A DNA stretch of 63,536 nucleotides, the filler included, from Choristocarpus tenellus KU-1152 (lineage: Eukaryota > Protista > Phaeophyceae): assembly GCA_964200185.2 (NCBI GenBank). It is 12 parts of 12 records of this genome, joined end to end, with 100 filler letters (N's around TTAATTAATTAA, not from the genome) between each part and the next. Parts side by side here need not be neighbours in the genome. Positions count along the whole stretch, not along the records: positions 17,368 to 22,055 come from CAXNAD020013459.1; positions 22,156 to 25,919 come from CAXNAD020018070.1; 10 more parts are not named here. One strand, 5' to 3'. Made by a program: the position numbers and the translations under genes. Numbering within the stretch: the stretch's first letter is position 1; the number at the start of each line of letters is the position of its first letter. The notes under the pieces are model-generated. The model was not told where the DNA came from. It ran no database searches and saw only the letters and a program-made list of their open reading frames with translations. Of this stretch, positions 6,220 to 25,919 are shown in pieces.

Positions 6220-6995
6220 ACCTACCGATTGAATGTTTCGGTGAAGATTCCGGACCGTGGCTTGGGGGCTTCGCGGCCGCCGCGCCGTGGGAAGTTAGCA
6301 CGTTCAGTAGCAGGGAAACTATGCCATGCCTTCAAATAATGCATCTCTTTGTAGCCATGAGTTCCATGCTTCAACTTGACCTATCTATTCCTTTGCCCCG
6401 AGTCTTCTTCTTTCCCCTTTGCCACCTGGCCCCTCCCATCCTCAAACCGTTGTTGCCACCCTCCTGACATGTTGGACCAATGAGAGATTAAGGTGTCTTG
6501 GACATCCTTCACTACAGTTCCATACCAACATCCTAGAAGTTACTTCTGGCCCATGCACTGAGCATTCTACTCCTCCATCCTCTAATCGTCCTGGCATCTG
6601 CACCTGTTGCCCCTCTGTGCTTGCTGATCATGACTTTTCCCCTTCCCATGTCCCAGTTTTTTGCAGGGATTGTTGGCCACTCTGCTGCTATGATTGCAGA
6701 TGCAGGTCACTCTCTCTCAGATTTGGTGTCAGATGCAGTGACCCTGTGGGCGGTGCGCCTGAGTCGCCTCCCACCGGACGATGATCACCCCTACGGCCAT
6801 GGAAGGTTTGAGGCGTTGGGTGCCTTTGTCATCTCGGTAATGCTCCTTACTGCAGGCTATGGCATAGGCAACCACTCATATGAGACCCTGGTGCAAATTA
6901 TCCATTCGTCCAAGGCAGCAGCGGTTGGGGGGGTGGGGGGGGTTTCCGCCCATGCTCATGTGCCCACGAGGCTGACAGCTATGGCAGCAACAGTC
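1140..6995 (+). CDS. Cation diffusion facilitator (CDF / cation efflux) transporter, MMT1/MTP6/FieF-like; 6 exons, 3' truncated by contig end
   Basis: Phase-consistent GT-AG exons 1140-1307, 1596-1930, 2421-2576, 4018-4044, 5706-5838, 6657-6995. Spliced protein contains ITWIGAFVNIGLAGFK-FFAGIVGHSAAMIADAGHSLSDLVSD...PPDDDHPYGHGRFEALG, the CDF TM1-TM3 signature. N-terminus is hydrophobic then His-rich. The small exons 4 and 5 are less certain. Confidence 0.88.
6098..6296 (+). rRNA. 18S rRNA 3'-region fragment (~200 bp, pseudogenic) inside intron 5 of the CDF gene
   Basis: Contains GAACGAGGAATTCCTAGTA, GATTACGTCCCTGCCCTTTGTACACACCGCCCGTCG and the start of V9. No other rDNA sequence flanks it. 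Confidence 0.92.
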
Positions 6996-19574: not shown

Positions 19575-22329
19575 CTACAACCATGAAGGGATTGATCAGG
19601 AAGAAATGAGACAGGCAGGAGGAGACACAGGCAGAGGTATGGAAAAGGGAACCACACGAGTGAAAGGGAATGGCCGAGAATGAGGTTGGGAAGAAGGAAC
19701 AAACTAAACTATATTAGGGGTAAGTAATCGTGAACATATTTTCATGATAAACTAATATTCATGTACATGGGTACATTGCCAAAAAATCGTTATGCGAATG
19801 ATTGAGCAAGTCTTAAAACTCATCAGATTATTATTCCAAATCCTCTCTTGATTTCTACTATTCCGAAGTGAGCAGAGCATGAAAAATGGTTCCAAATATA
19901 TATATATAATTTCGTAACCTTAAACGGCGTACTTGGACTAGTCCGGCGTCACCGCGCGCACGACCGGACGATTGGCGTTTTCGTGTCTGGATAGTTGTGG
20001 ATTTTTTCTTTTGGCTGAAAACCACAATAAGATAGGGCGAGGCAAAACATATGTGCAAGAAAAAGAATAAAATTGTTTGAAGCCTGTTATGATACTATGT
20101 TGCTGGTTGACTCAAACAAACTCTCTGAGTACTCCCCGTACATGCTTGATCTCTATCTCAAGATGTAGTGCGTCTTATCAGAAGATGAATACATCAAAAT
20201 AAAGCTTACATTGTTTACTTTGAATCTCATAATATTGTGGTTTTGCACCATTCTCGATCAATTTTCGTATCATCTGAGTTCAAAATTTGAATTGTCGTTA
20301 GGATATAAGCTATTATGCAAGAATGTAGCACGAACTTCCCCTTGGACACCGGATTTCAAAAGGACACACTTCCAAGCTTCACTTGATCCATTAATCAGGT
20401 TAAAATCAAGTCGAGAATTTTGGCATGATGAACCAACTGTGGTTATATACTCATATATGAATGTGTACTCAGGAATGGGTGGGTGGCTTCATGCATTCGC
20501 TATTTATGTGCATATTCAATCACTGTTATGTTCAAAACAAGCAAGAAGCGTATCAATATCACATATCTCCAAACATGTGTGCCATCTGTGTGTCTGAGTC
20601 TATGAGCTACCAGGTGAGTCTGTCTTTCTTTTGTGGATTAAGATTTTATTAGTGATAATATGCAGTGATTTGAAGTAAAAATATTGATATCAACAACAGG
20701 AATAAATAGGGGTATGTATGACTGCAACTACCACCTCTATCTTATCACAGCTAGAAGTGAAGTTGTCGGATAACTGTGAAACTGCTGTAACTGTTGTGGT
20801 CCATGGTATGCTAGAGGGGGGGGGGGGGCTTAGTCCCTGTTGTCTACTTGGGACTTGAATGGGTGTAATAAACACATCCCAATTTGATGCCCGTTTTACA
20901 GGTGATTTCCTCCTGATTTATTCCAGGCAGGGGGGATATAGGTGCGCTCAGATGAACGAAATCGCTCTTACATCTGACATATTCACCCAAATGATAAGGA
21001 AATCACTACAGGGTCACAAATGTCCCAATGGATGCCTGAAGCCCCCTCTAGGATACTAAAAGTTCGACTCACAAAATGTGCAGAAGACCCAAGCGCGCCT
21101 ATACACAAGGTGAGCACTATCAGCAGTCATTCAAACTATTTTTTGATATTTTTGCCTTTGGCCCCAATTAGTGCTGTACTGCCATACCCAGCCCAACCAT
21201 CCACCCAAGTCAGGGCTAAGCCAATAAAGGTGCAAGGTGACATCATGTACAGCGCATATTGTTTTAGTGCCCCCTGGCATTCTGCCGATGTTGTTGTAAG
21301 GGGGACAAGAGATGTCATACAACAAGGCACAAATAATTCAATAGACATGACAACACATTCTGTGTATTGCTTACAACAAAGACCTTCCAAGTTGTTGTAC
21401 ACCTAACCCCATATACATACAGGTGCATACACAAAATCGTTTTTTTCTCACACGCATGTGTGTATACGACAAAACGCACGTTCAATAAACTTCCACTGCC
21501 CGCACACTGCGAGTGCACGACAATCAGACAGATTGCCCGAATTCCCCTGCGTTCAAGCTTATCAAACCCCAACCAACTCAATAAAGGGGTTTCCAACATT
21601 CTGGCAGGCCTTTAGACGCATGCCAAAATAATGCCTAGTCCTACTTCGGCAGAGTTTTCAGCGACACGCCTTTTTACCTAGTGCAACACCTTGTCAGAGC
21701 CAGGGAGGGACATCGATTTTTCAGAGGGACTGCTCCAGTATCACGCATCTAGAGAGAGGCCGGCGCACTTGAACAGTGTTGGAGGCGTTGTTTTGCTCTA
21801 AAAAAATCGGTAGCTGCTTGGGGTGATCTAAAGGATATGCTCCTACAGTTTCCCCCAACAATAAACAAGATCAAGAGTAATCTTCCAATACTGTTTGCCT
21901 GTCAAAGTTATGCTTGACCATTTGTGAAAATAAGATTCGAAGTAGTATTTTATGTACGTACAGATGATGATGATGTGGGACATTCGCGATATTTAGGGTT
22001 AGGGTATTATTTTACCAGAAGAAATTGGTGGAATGTTAAGAGTCGGAGTGTTTCTNNNNNNNNNNNNNNNNNNNNNNNNNNNNNNNNNNNNNNNNNNNNT
22101 TAATTAATTAANNNNNNNNNNNNNNNNNNNNNNNNNNNNNNNNNNNNNNNNNNNNCTGCAGTGCAGACGTCTTTTCTTCTGAGCTGTACACACTTTTCCT
22201 ACCAATGTCAGACCGGGCCCGGGGCCGCAGAGTAGGTGTACACAACGGTGAAATAACAGTTATTGTGTCTTCCTTCGTAAAAGCGACGAAGAGTATCATC
22301 ATCATCATCGTAGCCTTGACATAGCAAAC

Positions 22330-23552
22330 GAAAAAAATAGCACTTCTTACGAATCTTCACATTTTTTTTTAACCATAATCTCAGACTGGTCAACGTAGTA
22401 AACACACACCACTCGAAATACTCCTTTGATCCACTTCTTCTACGTACTGTTGGGTCACATGGTTTGCAACTAACTCCAACACAGGGTGTGACCAACCTTT
22501 CCACAGCCAAGGGCAAAACCTACCTCTTTGTTCACGGCGTAGATCACAATTGCGGACTTGTGAGGCATGAACTACCCGTATGTATCCGCCCAGTAGTCTA
22601 TCCAGGACATCACCAGGTCTTGCTTCGGAGCCATGTCCTTATCTTTGTTCGTGCCGTTCCTGTTGTAGTAGCGCATGTATGTATATAAATGGATGGGAGT
22701 TGTGCTGGAGGTGGATACAAGGGACGGGGGATGGAATTCTAGAGGAATCATATGCCAGCAACGGATCTCTACTTCTGTAGGTATTTACGCGTGGTAACTG
22801 CTGCAGCAGCGCAGGGACGGCCGGATGAGATGATATTGTTGAAGCATAAATAAACATATCACACGTGTATATACACATACATATATGTAACACATAACAC
22901 CACGCTGGAGGGATCTCTAACTTTGTACATCAGACATCTCGGCATGGTGACTGCAAAGTGAATGTGGCGAGTACGGTCGGATTACATTGTTCTGAGATAG
23001 GACTACTGTTCAATCATCAAGCAGGGGAAAAAATATAGCTGGTACAAATAACACTGTGTACATATGTCAAACCCACCTCTCCACGCCGGAGGATGCTCTT
23101 GCGTTATATGTACCTTTGCAAGCATCAATGATATGATTGGATTTTCTGAACGATGCCTTGAAAAACTGCGTACAAACGAGAATGTCGGCCGCGAGCATAG
23201 ATCCACCTCCAGGTTCCAAGTTAATGACAGGTACACGATCACCAAGGAAGTGCTTGCGATCGCGGTGGTTCTCACATGCCCGGATGATGTCCTGCTCTTT
23301 GGCCAACATGCATGCAAGGAAGGACTCGCTATCTGCCGGGAACTTCTTCACACAGGCTAAGCGCTTGCAGCAGTCACCCTGTTCGTTGACCGGGATGGGT
23401 TGAGTCCATTCTCGGCGAAGCTTTGCGCCGGTCGCTGAAGCGTCATTGGTAGAAAACTCCAGAGCATCATTGTTGGCGGGCTGGTGAGGGGGCAACATAG
23501 GGGGCGACGCAGGCGACAAAAGCCATCCCCTTACTGTGGGAGCAACTGTCAT
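22330..23552 (-). pseudogene. Putative Sola-like DNA transposase, N-terminal exons (copy 1), disrupted
   Basis: Exon 23552-23077 (GDCCKRLAC...VCTQFF) splices in phase 2 to 22659-22524 (VMSWIDYWADTYG*FMPHKSAIVI; in-frame TAG at 22572-22574), then degenerate W...NVKIRKKCYF. The order CC..C / VC..F / W...G..MP / W..VKI.K recalls Sola transposases. No catalytic domain lies in the contig. Confidence 0.5.
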
Positions 23553-23639
23553 GGTGTTTTGGGGCAACAAGCGGTCTTGGGCAGTGAGAAGGTCTAGGAG
23601 TGATGAGATTCGAAGCCGGGCGTATGAACGATGTTTGAG

Positions 23640-24350
23640 CTCCGGGCGATCCGTGGGACTACCCTGAGATCCATGATCCGGAAAATACGTGCATTACGAT
23701 TTTCGGAAGTTGTAAATCCGATTATATCCGTACTTACATTTTATAAATACAAAGCACATACTTCATTGATCTTGTACGTTTCCAATGTTCCGAAACCAAA
23801 GATAAAAAAAAAAACTGACACCCTCTAATTGTTTTAAATACAAAATATAAAATTGTTGGACATTTGTATTCTTAAAAATACTAGAGATGACAAAAAGCGG
23901 CTCTTGAGTTTCGGTGATCCAGTGAAGACCCAAAACACGTGCATTAGGATTTTTAGAAATAATAAATCCAGTAATAACCGTTCTTACAATTTTTGAAAAT
24001 ACAAAGCACGTACTTTATAGGTCTCACACGTTTCCAATGTTCAGAAACTAAAAGGTCACTTTCAACTGGTACCCTACAATTTATTTAAATACTAAATCCG
24101 TTTTTTGTCGACTTTAGGATTCTTAAAAATACTAGAGACGAAAAAAAGCGGCTCTTGAGTTTTGGTGATCCGTTCGGATCAATAAAACCATTGAAGAGCC
24201 AAAAGCCTTGCGTTAGGGTTTTACTAAATAATAATAATATTCTAATGTTTATATCAACAAATAAAAATACAAACCACATACTTCATTGATCCAATACGTT
24301 TGAAACGTACGAAACGAAAAGGTTACAAAAAACTGATACTCTGTATCTCT
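23640..24350. repeat. Three degenerate ~250-270 bp tandem units between divergent genes (copy 1)
   Basis: AATACAAA(G/C)CAC recurs near 23746, 23998 and 24266. ATTCTTAAAAATACTAGAGA.GA.AAAAAGCGGCTCTTGAGTTT.GGTGATCC occurs twice. Confidence 0.85.
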
Positions 24351-24552
24351 TTTCAATATGCTGTTCGATATTCGTATTTTTTATAACACAATTATCAACG
24401 GAAAGAGAAATCTGAGTTATGAGGACCGACCGACCAGATGAAATAAAGTAGCACCTCCCAGCCCTCTGTCTTCATTTCAATTCCTTCCCCTCCGTACATA
24501 CTACACGCACCTGTTATTTATCGATCCCCGTCAGACCCTCCCAATCTTCGCC

Positions 24553-25715
24553 ATGTCCAGCATTCGCTCAACAACAACCCACCCGCCCGCTGATGGCGCT
24601 GCCCACGGATCAAGATCGTGGTACAGCAATTTGAAGGGCCTGTTCTCACTCCTAGAACATCACTACCTCGGCACGTACCAGATGAAACTCGGCATCATCA
24701 CATGCACGGAGATGGTGCGTCCCCTGAGCGAGCGTGGCCTTGTGCGCGTCAGCAAGTCCATCCGTGAAAAGGGCTGGCTAGAGCAGTTTGCTCCGTCTGT
24801 CGTCATCCAACGGGACTGCTTAGGAAACGGGGACCAGCTCACCGCCGAAACTGCGCTTGGCATTCAAGGACGAACACTGGACGGAAACCATAGAATAACG
24901 GTGCTGAAGAGAGAGTTTGATCCCGAACGCGCTGTCATGATGCAGGTCTACATGGAGTTCAACCAAGCAGAAGAGAGGCTAATTGCCAATGGTGGGTGAT
25001 GAAGTGTTGTCGTTGTTTCATGATCGCCTGACTCTTCTGATCAACTAAGCAACAAAGTAAGTTGAGTGTTATCGTTGTTCCATGATCGCCTGATGACTCT
25101 TCTGATCTACCAAGTTGTTGCCGAGTTTCCTTTGTTTGGTTCATCGTCAGTCAGCCCATTGATGATCTTTTCGTTGTTGATCTTTTTTATCCCTCGTGGT
25201 CTTTCTGTCGACAGCAACATGTTGCTCACTACTGCCTGCCGCGTGTGTCCCGTGACCGCTTCCCACCTACCCCTTGTCCCGTTTGCCCACTGCATCGCCA
25301 CACTTATAGCATTCAACGACACGACCGAGAGTGTGGTTGAGCGCACGCTGTACGATAAGGTAGAGAGTGAAAGTATCTTAGAGGGTACGAGTTTTGCCCT
25401 GTTTGTCCATTTGGGGCTTGACTTCCCTCGGGGTTTTTATGACATTTTCCTACTCCGAAATGATTTTGGAGTAGGTAGAATACATACGTTATGAAAAGGT
25501 GTGTTCGGAACAAGGATATTGACACGTCGTAACAAACAGATAGCCAAAATTACATCAAAATCGCAACATTGGATTTTGACCCCCAAATGGACGCGGCTTT
25601 ACCCTCTAAGATACTTTGGCTCGTATATTTTCATCACGAGCTCGAAGAAGCTATCAAATGACAGACGAAGAAAAAAGAAGTGTCACTAGCAGAGGTCCGC
25701 AAAATGTACAAAAAT
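24553..25715 (+). pseudogene. ParB-N / sulfiredoxin-fold domain gene (copy 1), exon 2 disrupted
   Basis: Exon 1 24553-24991: VRPLSERGLVRVSKSIREKGW...TLDGNHRITVL. Exon 2 25310-25715 is interrupted by a family B MITE and a CGA>TGA stop at 25659. Confidence 0.72.
25365..25622 (+). mobile_element. MITE family B, full length (258 bp)
   Basis: TIRs GAGTGAAAGTATCTTAGAGGGTA / TACCCTCTAAGATACTTTGGCTC. Empty site is visible in the paralogue near 42105-42120. Confidence 0.92.
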
Positions 25716-25853
25716 GTGAGGGAGTTGTCAACGTTGGTGGGATGGTGGCGCTCTACTCCTCCTCTTGTTGGGTTACAGCTGTTTTGAAATCTCTCTGTGT
25801 CCTCCTATTCAACCTAAGTTGAGATAGTTATCCCGCGTTTAGCAACCCTGTCA

Positions 25854-25919
25854 GAGTGAAAGTATCTTAGAGGGTACGAGTTTTGCCCTGTTTGTCCATT
25901 TGGGGCTTGGCTTCCTATG
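25854..25919 (+). mobile_element. MITE family B left end (contig break)
   Basis: Near-identical to 25365-25430. Confidence 0.88.

Follow-up and report, generated by a model that had tools for sequence, protein, structure and literature searches.

A probable decayed Sola1-type transposon module with a head-to-head ParB/sulfiredoxin-fold accessory gene in the brown alga Choristocarpus tenellus

RESULTS

Gene layout of the locus

A 3,764-bp piece of the Choristocarpus tenellus KU-1152 genome (positions 22156-25919; record CAXNAD020018070.1, assembly GCA_964200185.2) was examined within a window of 63,536 nucleotides, the window being the whole stretch of 12 joined genome parts with their filler. 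Within this piece two genes diverge from an AT-rich center, and together they probably represent the decayed remains of a Sola1-superfamily DNA transposon in which a transposase gene is paired with a gene for a ParB-like protein. The coding blocks (GC content 0.50-0.58) flank a center of GC 0.31, and the start codons are 1,000 bp apart, with the minus-strand ATG at 23552 and the first plus-strand exon opening at 24553. Open reading frames (ORFs) and GT..AG junctions bear out the original prediction of two divergent intron-containing genes about 1 kb apart. The whole arrangement had also been said to recur as a diverged copy on another contig, and this was found to be so: the 3-kb C. tenellus contig CAXNAD020022539.1 (L002) aligns collinearly with 23035-25853, through introns and spacer as well as exons, and the nucleotide identity is 84-95%. 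Homology searches were run exon by exon, with the exons joined only for reading-frame checks. An Rfam search of the piece gave no match.

The plus-strand gene

The first exon of the plus-strand gene (24553-24991, +) begins with an ATG and carries the motif R..L....V.KSI..KGW...P.VV...LDGNHR (exon text ...VRPLSERGLVRVSKSIREKGWLEQFAPSVVIQ...GRTLDGNHRITVLK...), in which LDGNHR occupies residues 109-114. An exhaustive phmmer search of this exon over 1.84 billion representatives returned 95 homologue clusters at an E-value ≤ 1e-3; the homologues that bear a name are all brown-algal "unnamed protein products", from C. tenellus (80% identity), Sphacelaria rigidula and Pylaiella littoralis. When 60 members were aligned, D110 and G111 were found to be invariant, H113 and R114 were present in at least 90%, and R56, G62, G74 and P81 were near-invariant. 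The exon had no usable match in Pfam, NCBIfam or PHROGs, nor in a phmmer search of the PDB sequences. The sole PHROG match obtained in sequence-only searches with the first exons of both genes stood at E 0.016, for a PHROG family of unknown function, and among the 60 homologues Pfam gave sub-threshold hints in single members, to GmrSD_N (0.015), DUF6551 (0.02) and DUF3723 (0.06).

The fold of this exon was modeled with AlphaFold2 from the homologue alignment, with a predicted local distance difference test score (pLDDT) of 87.6 and a predicted template modeling score (pTM) of 0.77. All of the top 50 Foldseek matches of this model in the PDB were of the ParB/sulfiredoxin (Srx) fold, including PadC, ParB with CDP or CTPgammaS, Noc, KorB, Srx, SbnI and the serine kinase SerK, with a best E-value of 2e-4. 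In the model DGNHR lies at a strand-helix junction, at the end of the strand formed by residues 106-110 and the start of the helix formed by residues 112-121. The proposal of a ParB-N/Srx fold is therefore borne out at the fold level, and the model supports a ParB/Srx-fold N-terminal domain for the predicted plus-strand protein.

Intron 1 of this gene (24992-25309, +) has its GT donor at 24992 and its AG acceptor at 25308-9, and the spliced joint is present in a contig of run X3 (described below). A 62-65-bp tandem duplication lies within the intron at 25003-25114, where 25003-25049 appears again at 25065-25114 (90-93% identical), and some run contigs have the single-unit form (joint 25097 to 25036). 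Exon 2 (25310-25715, +; donor GTGAGG at 25716) is split by an insertion into 25310-25362 and 25626-25715, and in translation it continues ...IANAFNDTTESVVERTLYDK; in the same region the Sphacelaria protein P0009 reads on as ..IANSFNDATESVLERSIYDRIYFQNELHK... The gene is cut at 25919, after about 195 residues. Beyond the N-terminal domain, the Pylaiella relative P0110 (454 amino acids, partial) has a helical region without a Pfam domain, and a homologue search with its region 36-290 returned its own cluster alone. No methyltransferase match was found by Pfam in P0110, in P0030 or in the plus-strand ORFs of the relative L006 (described below), and a scan of the relatives for (D/N/S)PP(Y/F/W) on the strand of the gene, downstream of the ParB-like domain, gave no plausible motif.

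The minus-strand gene

Exon 1 of the minus-strand gene (23077-23552, -), placed by its reading frame and homologues, leads from the ATG through a low-complexity N-terminus into a Cys-containing block, and its motifs follow the order CC-x-L-x-C..F, EQ, DRK-F, VP, GSM-AA, VC..F..F and S..I..CKGT. Protein identity over this exon was 83% to L002, 55% to the Logan contig L001 and 29% to the relative L004 (E 3e-11), a copy of the ERZ26962164 element described below. The exon alone had no usable match in Pfam, PHROGs, NCBIfam, PDB or the first homologue search, and a protein-atlas search led to unnamed eukaryotic clusters that offered no lead. A four-sequence profile returned 25 homologues (weakest E 1e-17), none of them named and none with a Pfam domain, one 90%-identity cluster having 111 members. 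Given these 25 homologues and the 95 homologue clusters of the plus-strand exon, the motifs in the two genes are not chance resemblances.

Intron 1 (22660-23076, -) has GT..AG ends and an in-frame junction, and its joint (22658/9-23075/6) occurs in five X3 contigs; alternative splice sites at 23084/22713 with a donor at 22509 were ruled out by this joint and the frame check. Exon 2 (22524-22659, -) reads ..WIDYWADTYG(stop)FMPHKSAIVIYAVNKE and ends ...AVNKE at the donor AAAGAG/GTAGGT. The corresponding exons of L004 (ORF 6230-6481, -) and L006 (8082-8372, -) read ..YIDHFAEVYGQLMPHENATYLYLGSKQ, and the exon 2 of a relative also carries ..YIDHFAEVYGQLMPHE..; for the part of the window exon before the stop, BLASTP gave an E-value of 9e-6. 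Downstream, the remaining region (22156-22523, -) is cut by the edge of the piece, and enumeration leaves several splice options open; one X3 contig skips 22279-22491, with non-canonical ends. Two third-exon candidates, "VKIRKK" and "YDDDDD..YFTVVY", bore only a loose likeness to L006 and to Sola1-1_Ec32, the Ectocarpus Sola1 element, and were set aside (BLASTP E 0.84). A VKI.K motif noted earlier at about 22340-22360 could likewise not be confirmed, the BLASTP comparison with the L006 exon not being significant at that E-value.

The catalytic exons of the window copy, with their Asp-Asp-Asp (DDD) core, would fall beyond the left edge of the piece at 22156. In L006 the same gene does extend to catalytic exons: the segment 3449-3694 (-) reads ..QVDNCGSENKN..GHTHIKIDQ.. 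and matches Pfam DUF7869 at an E-value of 6.7e-19 (68.7 bits against a cutoff of 26). By-eye reading of the supplement text for Sola1-1_Ec32 found (i) motifs collinear between its transposase and window exons 1 and 2, with exon 2 adding ..Y.DT....MP..; and (ii) a match of the QVDN..ENKN and GHTH..DQ exons of L006 to its core. A probable DDD core, of the kind that the original prediction had proposed to seek in the downstream exons, was recovered in a relative. Judged by motif order and by the reach of the relative's gene into a DUF7869 exon, what the piece has of the minus-strand gene is the N-terminal portion of a Sola1-type transposase, as had been predicted for the Sola type in general.

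Relatives, linkage and mobility

The head-to-head pair was found in L001, L002 and L004-L010, with a remnant in L011, and even where protein identity has fallen to 29-33% the arrangement persists, the spacer being about 0.7-1 kb long. Both genes stand head-to-head in L001 at 55-69% protein identity to the window. Between the window and L001 the ratio of nonsynonymous to synonymous substitution rates (dN/dS) was 0.18 for the ParB-like gene and 0.23 for the transposase, and in the comparison with L002, a close copy, it was relaxed (0.38-0.55). These ratios indicate that both genes are under purifying selection along the lineage. In L011 (P. littoralis CAXMZX020001026.1) transposase exon 1 survives as a weak remnant, divergently oriented and 1.1 kb upstream of the ParB-like gene. 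Helitron-type genes (PIF1 helicase and DUF6570; L011 851-6225) are also present there, 3.8 kb upstream of the ParB-like gene and beside the Sola1 exon remnant, and the region is a nest of transposons.

In the European Nucleotide Archive assembly ERZ26962164 the gene pair sits in the middle of a 17.9-kb repeat, whose copies are 98-99% identical and lie between unrelated flanks on different contigs of up to 2.2 Mb (L005 190-18125; L006 255-18112; L007 470-18342; L010 986-18785). All full copies are bounded by 517-bp terminal inverted repeats (TIRs; AACAGGG...CCCTGTT), and two of the four complete copies have a perfect 4-bp target-site duplication (TSD), AATA in L005 and CAGT in L010; the chance of at least two such matches in four copies was estimated at about 1e-4. 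The same assembly holds near-identical protein clusters of 45 and 111 members (90% identity) at unrelated loci. With copies this similar, the 17.9-kb family looks recently active. Of the features proposed at the outset for checking, TIRs and TSDs were seen in these relatives, the piece itself including no element ends, and the copies, here and in the run contigs described below, number far more than two and in ERZ26962164 lie at unrelated loci.

Each TIR of this element holds two 121-nt direct subterminal repeats (L006 310-559; 129-bp spacing, 93% identical), which may serve as binding sites of either the transposase or the accessory protein. Elsewhere the element encodes about 10 further ORFs of 130-320 amino acids without a Pfam match; a 322-amino-acid ORF has an "...ITVHWYTP..." block between acidic and Ser-rich tracts.

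Copies and expression in run data

Contigs from four public runs were aligned to the piece. In runs X1 and X2, 30-60 variant contigs were found per position across both genes, which makes the module multicopy in the source organism. Both first splice junctions are present as joined forms in X3: the minus-strand joint with GT..AG ends on that strand, and the plus-strand joint (24986-25309) in one contig, with AAAC between the sides, reading I-A-N-A-F-N in a diverged copy. X3 covered the exons at high depth and the introns and spacer at a depth 10-200 times lower, and both first introns were missing from some contigs. This exon-biased depth looks like transcript data, with intron-less DNA copies as the alternative; if X3 does represent transcripts, both genes have copies that are transcribed and spliced.

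Spacer between the genes

The AT-rich spacer (23660-24440; GC about 0.31) is built of three degenerate units in tandem, each about 255-270 bp long and containing short inverted repeats, with a mean column identity of 77%. It is probably a bidirectional promoter region. The three-unit array is common to the window and L002, and the spacers of L001 and L006 lack it; because the repeats are not conserved, its role as a candidate protein-binding array is speculative.

Decay of the window copy

The window copy is dead. Neither protein can be made from it because (i) the reading frame of transposase exon 2 is closed by a TAG (22572-22574) in the place of a Gln codon in a relative; (ii) exon 2 of the ParB-like gene has an in-frame TGA at 25659-25661, where L002 has CGA; and (iii) the latter exon is interrupted by a miniature inverted-repeat transposable element (MITE). 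The insertion (25363-25625) comprises an element of about 258 bp (25363/5-25622) with 23-nt TIRs, GAGTGAAAGTATCTTAGAGGGTA, plus one copy of the target duplication, which is either GTA (3-bp) or TA (2-bp), the two being indistinguishable. L002 keeps the empty site and an uninterrupted exon 2. Since 25365 and 25622 are the exact end points of hundreds of run contigs whose flanks are unrelated, the MITE is among the commonest repeats of the genome. A second copy of the same MITE starts at 25854 (25854-25919; 98% identity) and is cut by the edge of the piece; loose contig ends occur at 25854, and L002, whose alignment stops at 25853, is without it. The same MITE has thus inserted twice within 500 bp. 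At 2660-2672 L002 has GG in place of the AG acceptor of ParB-gene intron 1 in the window, and for this reason the L002 copy is probably also defective, though it is free of both MITEs and of the TGA.

DISCUSSION

Nature of the locus

Taken together, the data are best explained by a decayed central bidirectional module of a brown-algal Sola1-superfamily DNA transposon, a reading to which we assign a probability of about 85%. Of the earlier description of the locus as a "two-gene DNA transposon", the DNA transposon part stands, in the form of a multicopy family, and the two-gene part does not: the full-length relative measures 17.9 kb and the published Ectocarpus element 21.5 kb, and in the former the pair sits mid-element among many other ORFs.

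Several results weigh against this interpretation. In the window copy neither a catalytic core nor a TIR or TSD is in view, as the piece spans 3.8 kb and is cut on both sides. The match to Sola1-1_Ec32 is a by-eye comparison with supplement text and carries no E-value, and two of the four full ERZ26962164 copies (L006 and L007) have no TSD at any boundary offset. On the side of the accessory gene, Pfam ParBc (PF02195), proposed earlier as a check, did not match the window exon even at E ≤ 1; a profile of the 60 homologues searched against the PDB sequences gave only weak phycocyanin matches, based on a common "DGN.R" stretch and judged spurious; and the C-terminal region of the accessory protein was modeled with low confidence (P0110, pLDDT 40-69). 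Finally, the spacer repeats are not kept outside the lineage of the window and L002.

The alternative that survives best treats the ParB-like gene as a passenger (Pack-type cargo): a gene of host or foreign origin that a giant Sola1 element picked up on one occasion and that has no role in the biology of the element. Accessory genes without a known function are numerous in giant algal transposons (PMC12477816), the ERZ26962164 element has its further ORFs without a Pfam match, and the accessory role is predicted only. A passenger is nevertheless improbable in view of (i) the retention of the head-to-head pair and its short spacer at protein identities as low as about 30%; (ii) selection on the ParB exon as strong as that on the transposase; and (iii) the recurrence of ParB-N accessory genes in unrelated algal transposon superfamilies (10.1101/2025.02.11.637652).

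We consider an origin of the locus as part of an integrated DNA virus very unlikely, although phaeoviruses and polinton-like viruses also have long TIRs and genes of a prokaryote-like kind for handling DNA. Viral insertions are numerous in brown-algal genomes, ParB-like domains are a typical feature of phages and plasmids, and an 18-kb relative with 517-bp TIRs would not be out of keeping with such an origin; however, the larger ORFs tested with Pfam gave no capsid, packaging ATPase, polymerase or integrase match, the long gene encodes a DDD-type transposase and is interrupted by spliceosomal introns, and the 4-bp TSD together with the Sola1 match fits a cut-and-paste transposon. Least credible of all is an ordinary divergent host gene pair, segmentally duplicated and not mobile, for although both genes have introns as host genes do and the 3.8 kb in view include no ends, the runs hold dozens of diverged variants per position, nonsense codons affect both genes and a MITE one exon, the minus-strand gene matches a curated transposase, and relatives lie at many unrelated loci inside TIR-bounded elements with 4-bp TSDs.

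Comparison with known systems

The original prediction knew of no described element with such a layout. This did not hold: Sola1-1_Ec32, published for Ectocarpus in 2025 (Genome Biol; PMC12477816), is a 21.5-kb element with a ParB-like gene on the strand opposite to the transposase, imperfect TIRs of 282 bp, a 4-bp TSD (also listed for Sola-1 in the supplement table) and termini AACCG, and its 1104-amino-acid accessory protein combines the ParB-like domain with a fused DNA methyltransferase domain. The Sola1 reading of the window therefore adds a further example of a known arrangement. The window module resembles Sola1-1_Ec32 in being a brown-algal Sola1 with an opposite-strand ParB-like gene and, by eye, in the N-terminal transposase motif order of window exons 1 and 2, and the ERZ26962164 relative resembles it in giant size (17.9 kb against 21.5 kb) and in long TIRs (517 bp against 282 bp), with a 4-bp TSD in two of four full copies. 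They differ in that no methyltransferase was found in P0110 or the ERZ26962164 plus-strand ORFs, the window gene itself being cut at about 195 residues, and in that the ERZ26962164 termini are AACAGGG rather than AACCG.

A second parallel is provided by the PAG3 accessory proteins of red-algal Plavaka (KDZ/CACTA-type) giant transposons in Bostrychia moritziana, which have an N-terminal ParB-like domain, carry an oxygenase domain dependent on 2-oxoglutarate (2OG) and are encoded by a gene adjoined by repeat arrays that were proposed as binding sites (10.1101/2025.02.11.637652). As with PAG3, a ParB-N accessory gene is found here in a giant algal DNA transposon, and the window has three units of about 260 bp directly upstream of it. 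Unlike PAG3, the transposase belongs to another superfamily, the 2OG-dependent oxygenase is a PAG3 feature, and the window array is not kept in distant relatives.

At the level of fold, the modeled domain is like the CTPase domain of bacterial ParB, Noc and KorB, like PadC and like sulfiredoxin (Foldseek probability up to 1.00; query-normalized TM score 0.4-0.5 over about 105 residues), and it shares with ParB/Srx proteins a conserved Gly-x-x-Arg-type motif at a strand-helix junction. It is unlike bacterial ParB in sequence, at 11-22% identity and without a ParBc match. CTPase ParBs have the motif GERRxRA, whereas the window motif is DGNHR, which would place the protein nearer to the DGxHR/DGQHR nuclease-like and DndB-like branches.

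Proposed mechanism and significance

In the model that we propose, the gene transcribed leftward from the AT-rich spacer would encode the transposase, with the piece holding its N-terminal, probably DNA-binding, exons only, and the gene transcribed rightward would encode an accessory protein with a predicted nucleotide-binding N-terminal domain of the ParB/Srx fold. In intact copies the transposase would excise and integrate the whole 18-21 kb element by DDD cut-and-paste. The ParB-like protein, itself encoded by the element, may bind the DNA of that element in a nucleotide-dependent way; by marking or compacting the element, or by drawing its far-apart ends together, it might aid transposition or persistence at such a great length. 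Any such specific accessory role is put forward tentatively, with the odds somewhat against it. More doubtful is a stricter version, in which the ParB/Srx-fold protein would be an obligate, co-evolving second component, rather than cargo, of this Sola1 lineage, a nucleotide-switched DNA clamp or nuclease that sits on internal repeats and bridges or marks the ends of the roughly 18-21 kb element; the repeats in question might be the spacer arrays or the 121-nt subterminal TIR repeats. If true, the protein would be to a eukaryotic transposon what ParB-parS is to plasmids, and here it would do without the methyltransferase domain that the Ectocarpus protein has.

New here are a seemingly recently active 17.9-kb family and an accessory protein without a methyltransferase domain in its visible parts. 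For annotation, the Sola1 assignment accounts for a family of "unnamed protein products" in brown-algal assemblies, and the near-identical ERZ26962164 copies are possible material for testing DNA binding, nucleotide use and the effect of the protein on transposition. The pairing of Sola1 with a ParB-like gene is ancient, conserved across brown algae and beyond and not specific to Ectocarpus, as the pair is kept head-to-head from the early-branching Choristocarpus to the Ectocarpales (Pylaiella) and is also present in ERZ26962164. This conservation supports a reading of prokaryote-type ParB domains as functional components of giant algal transposons.

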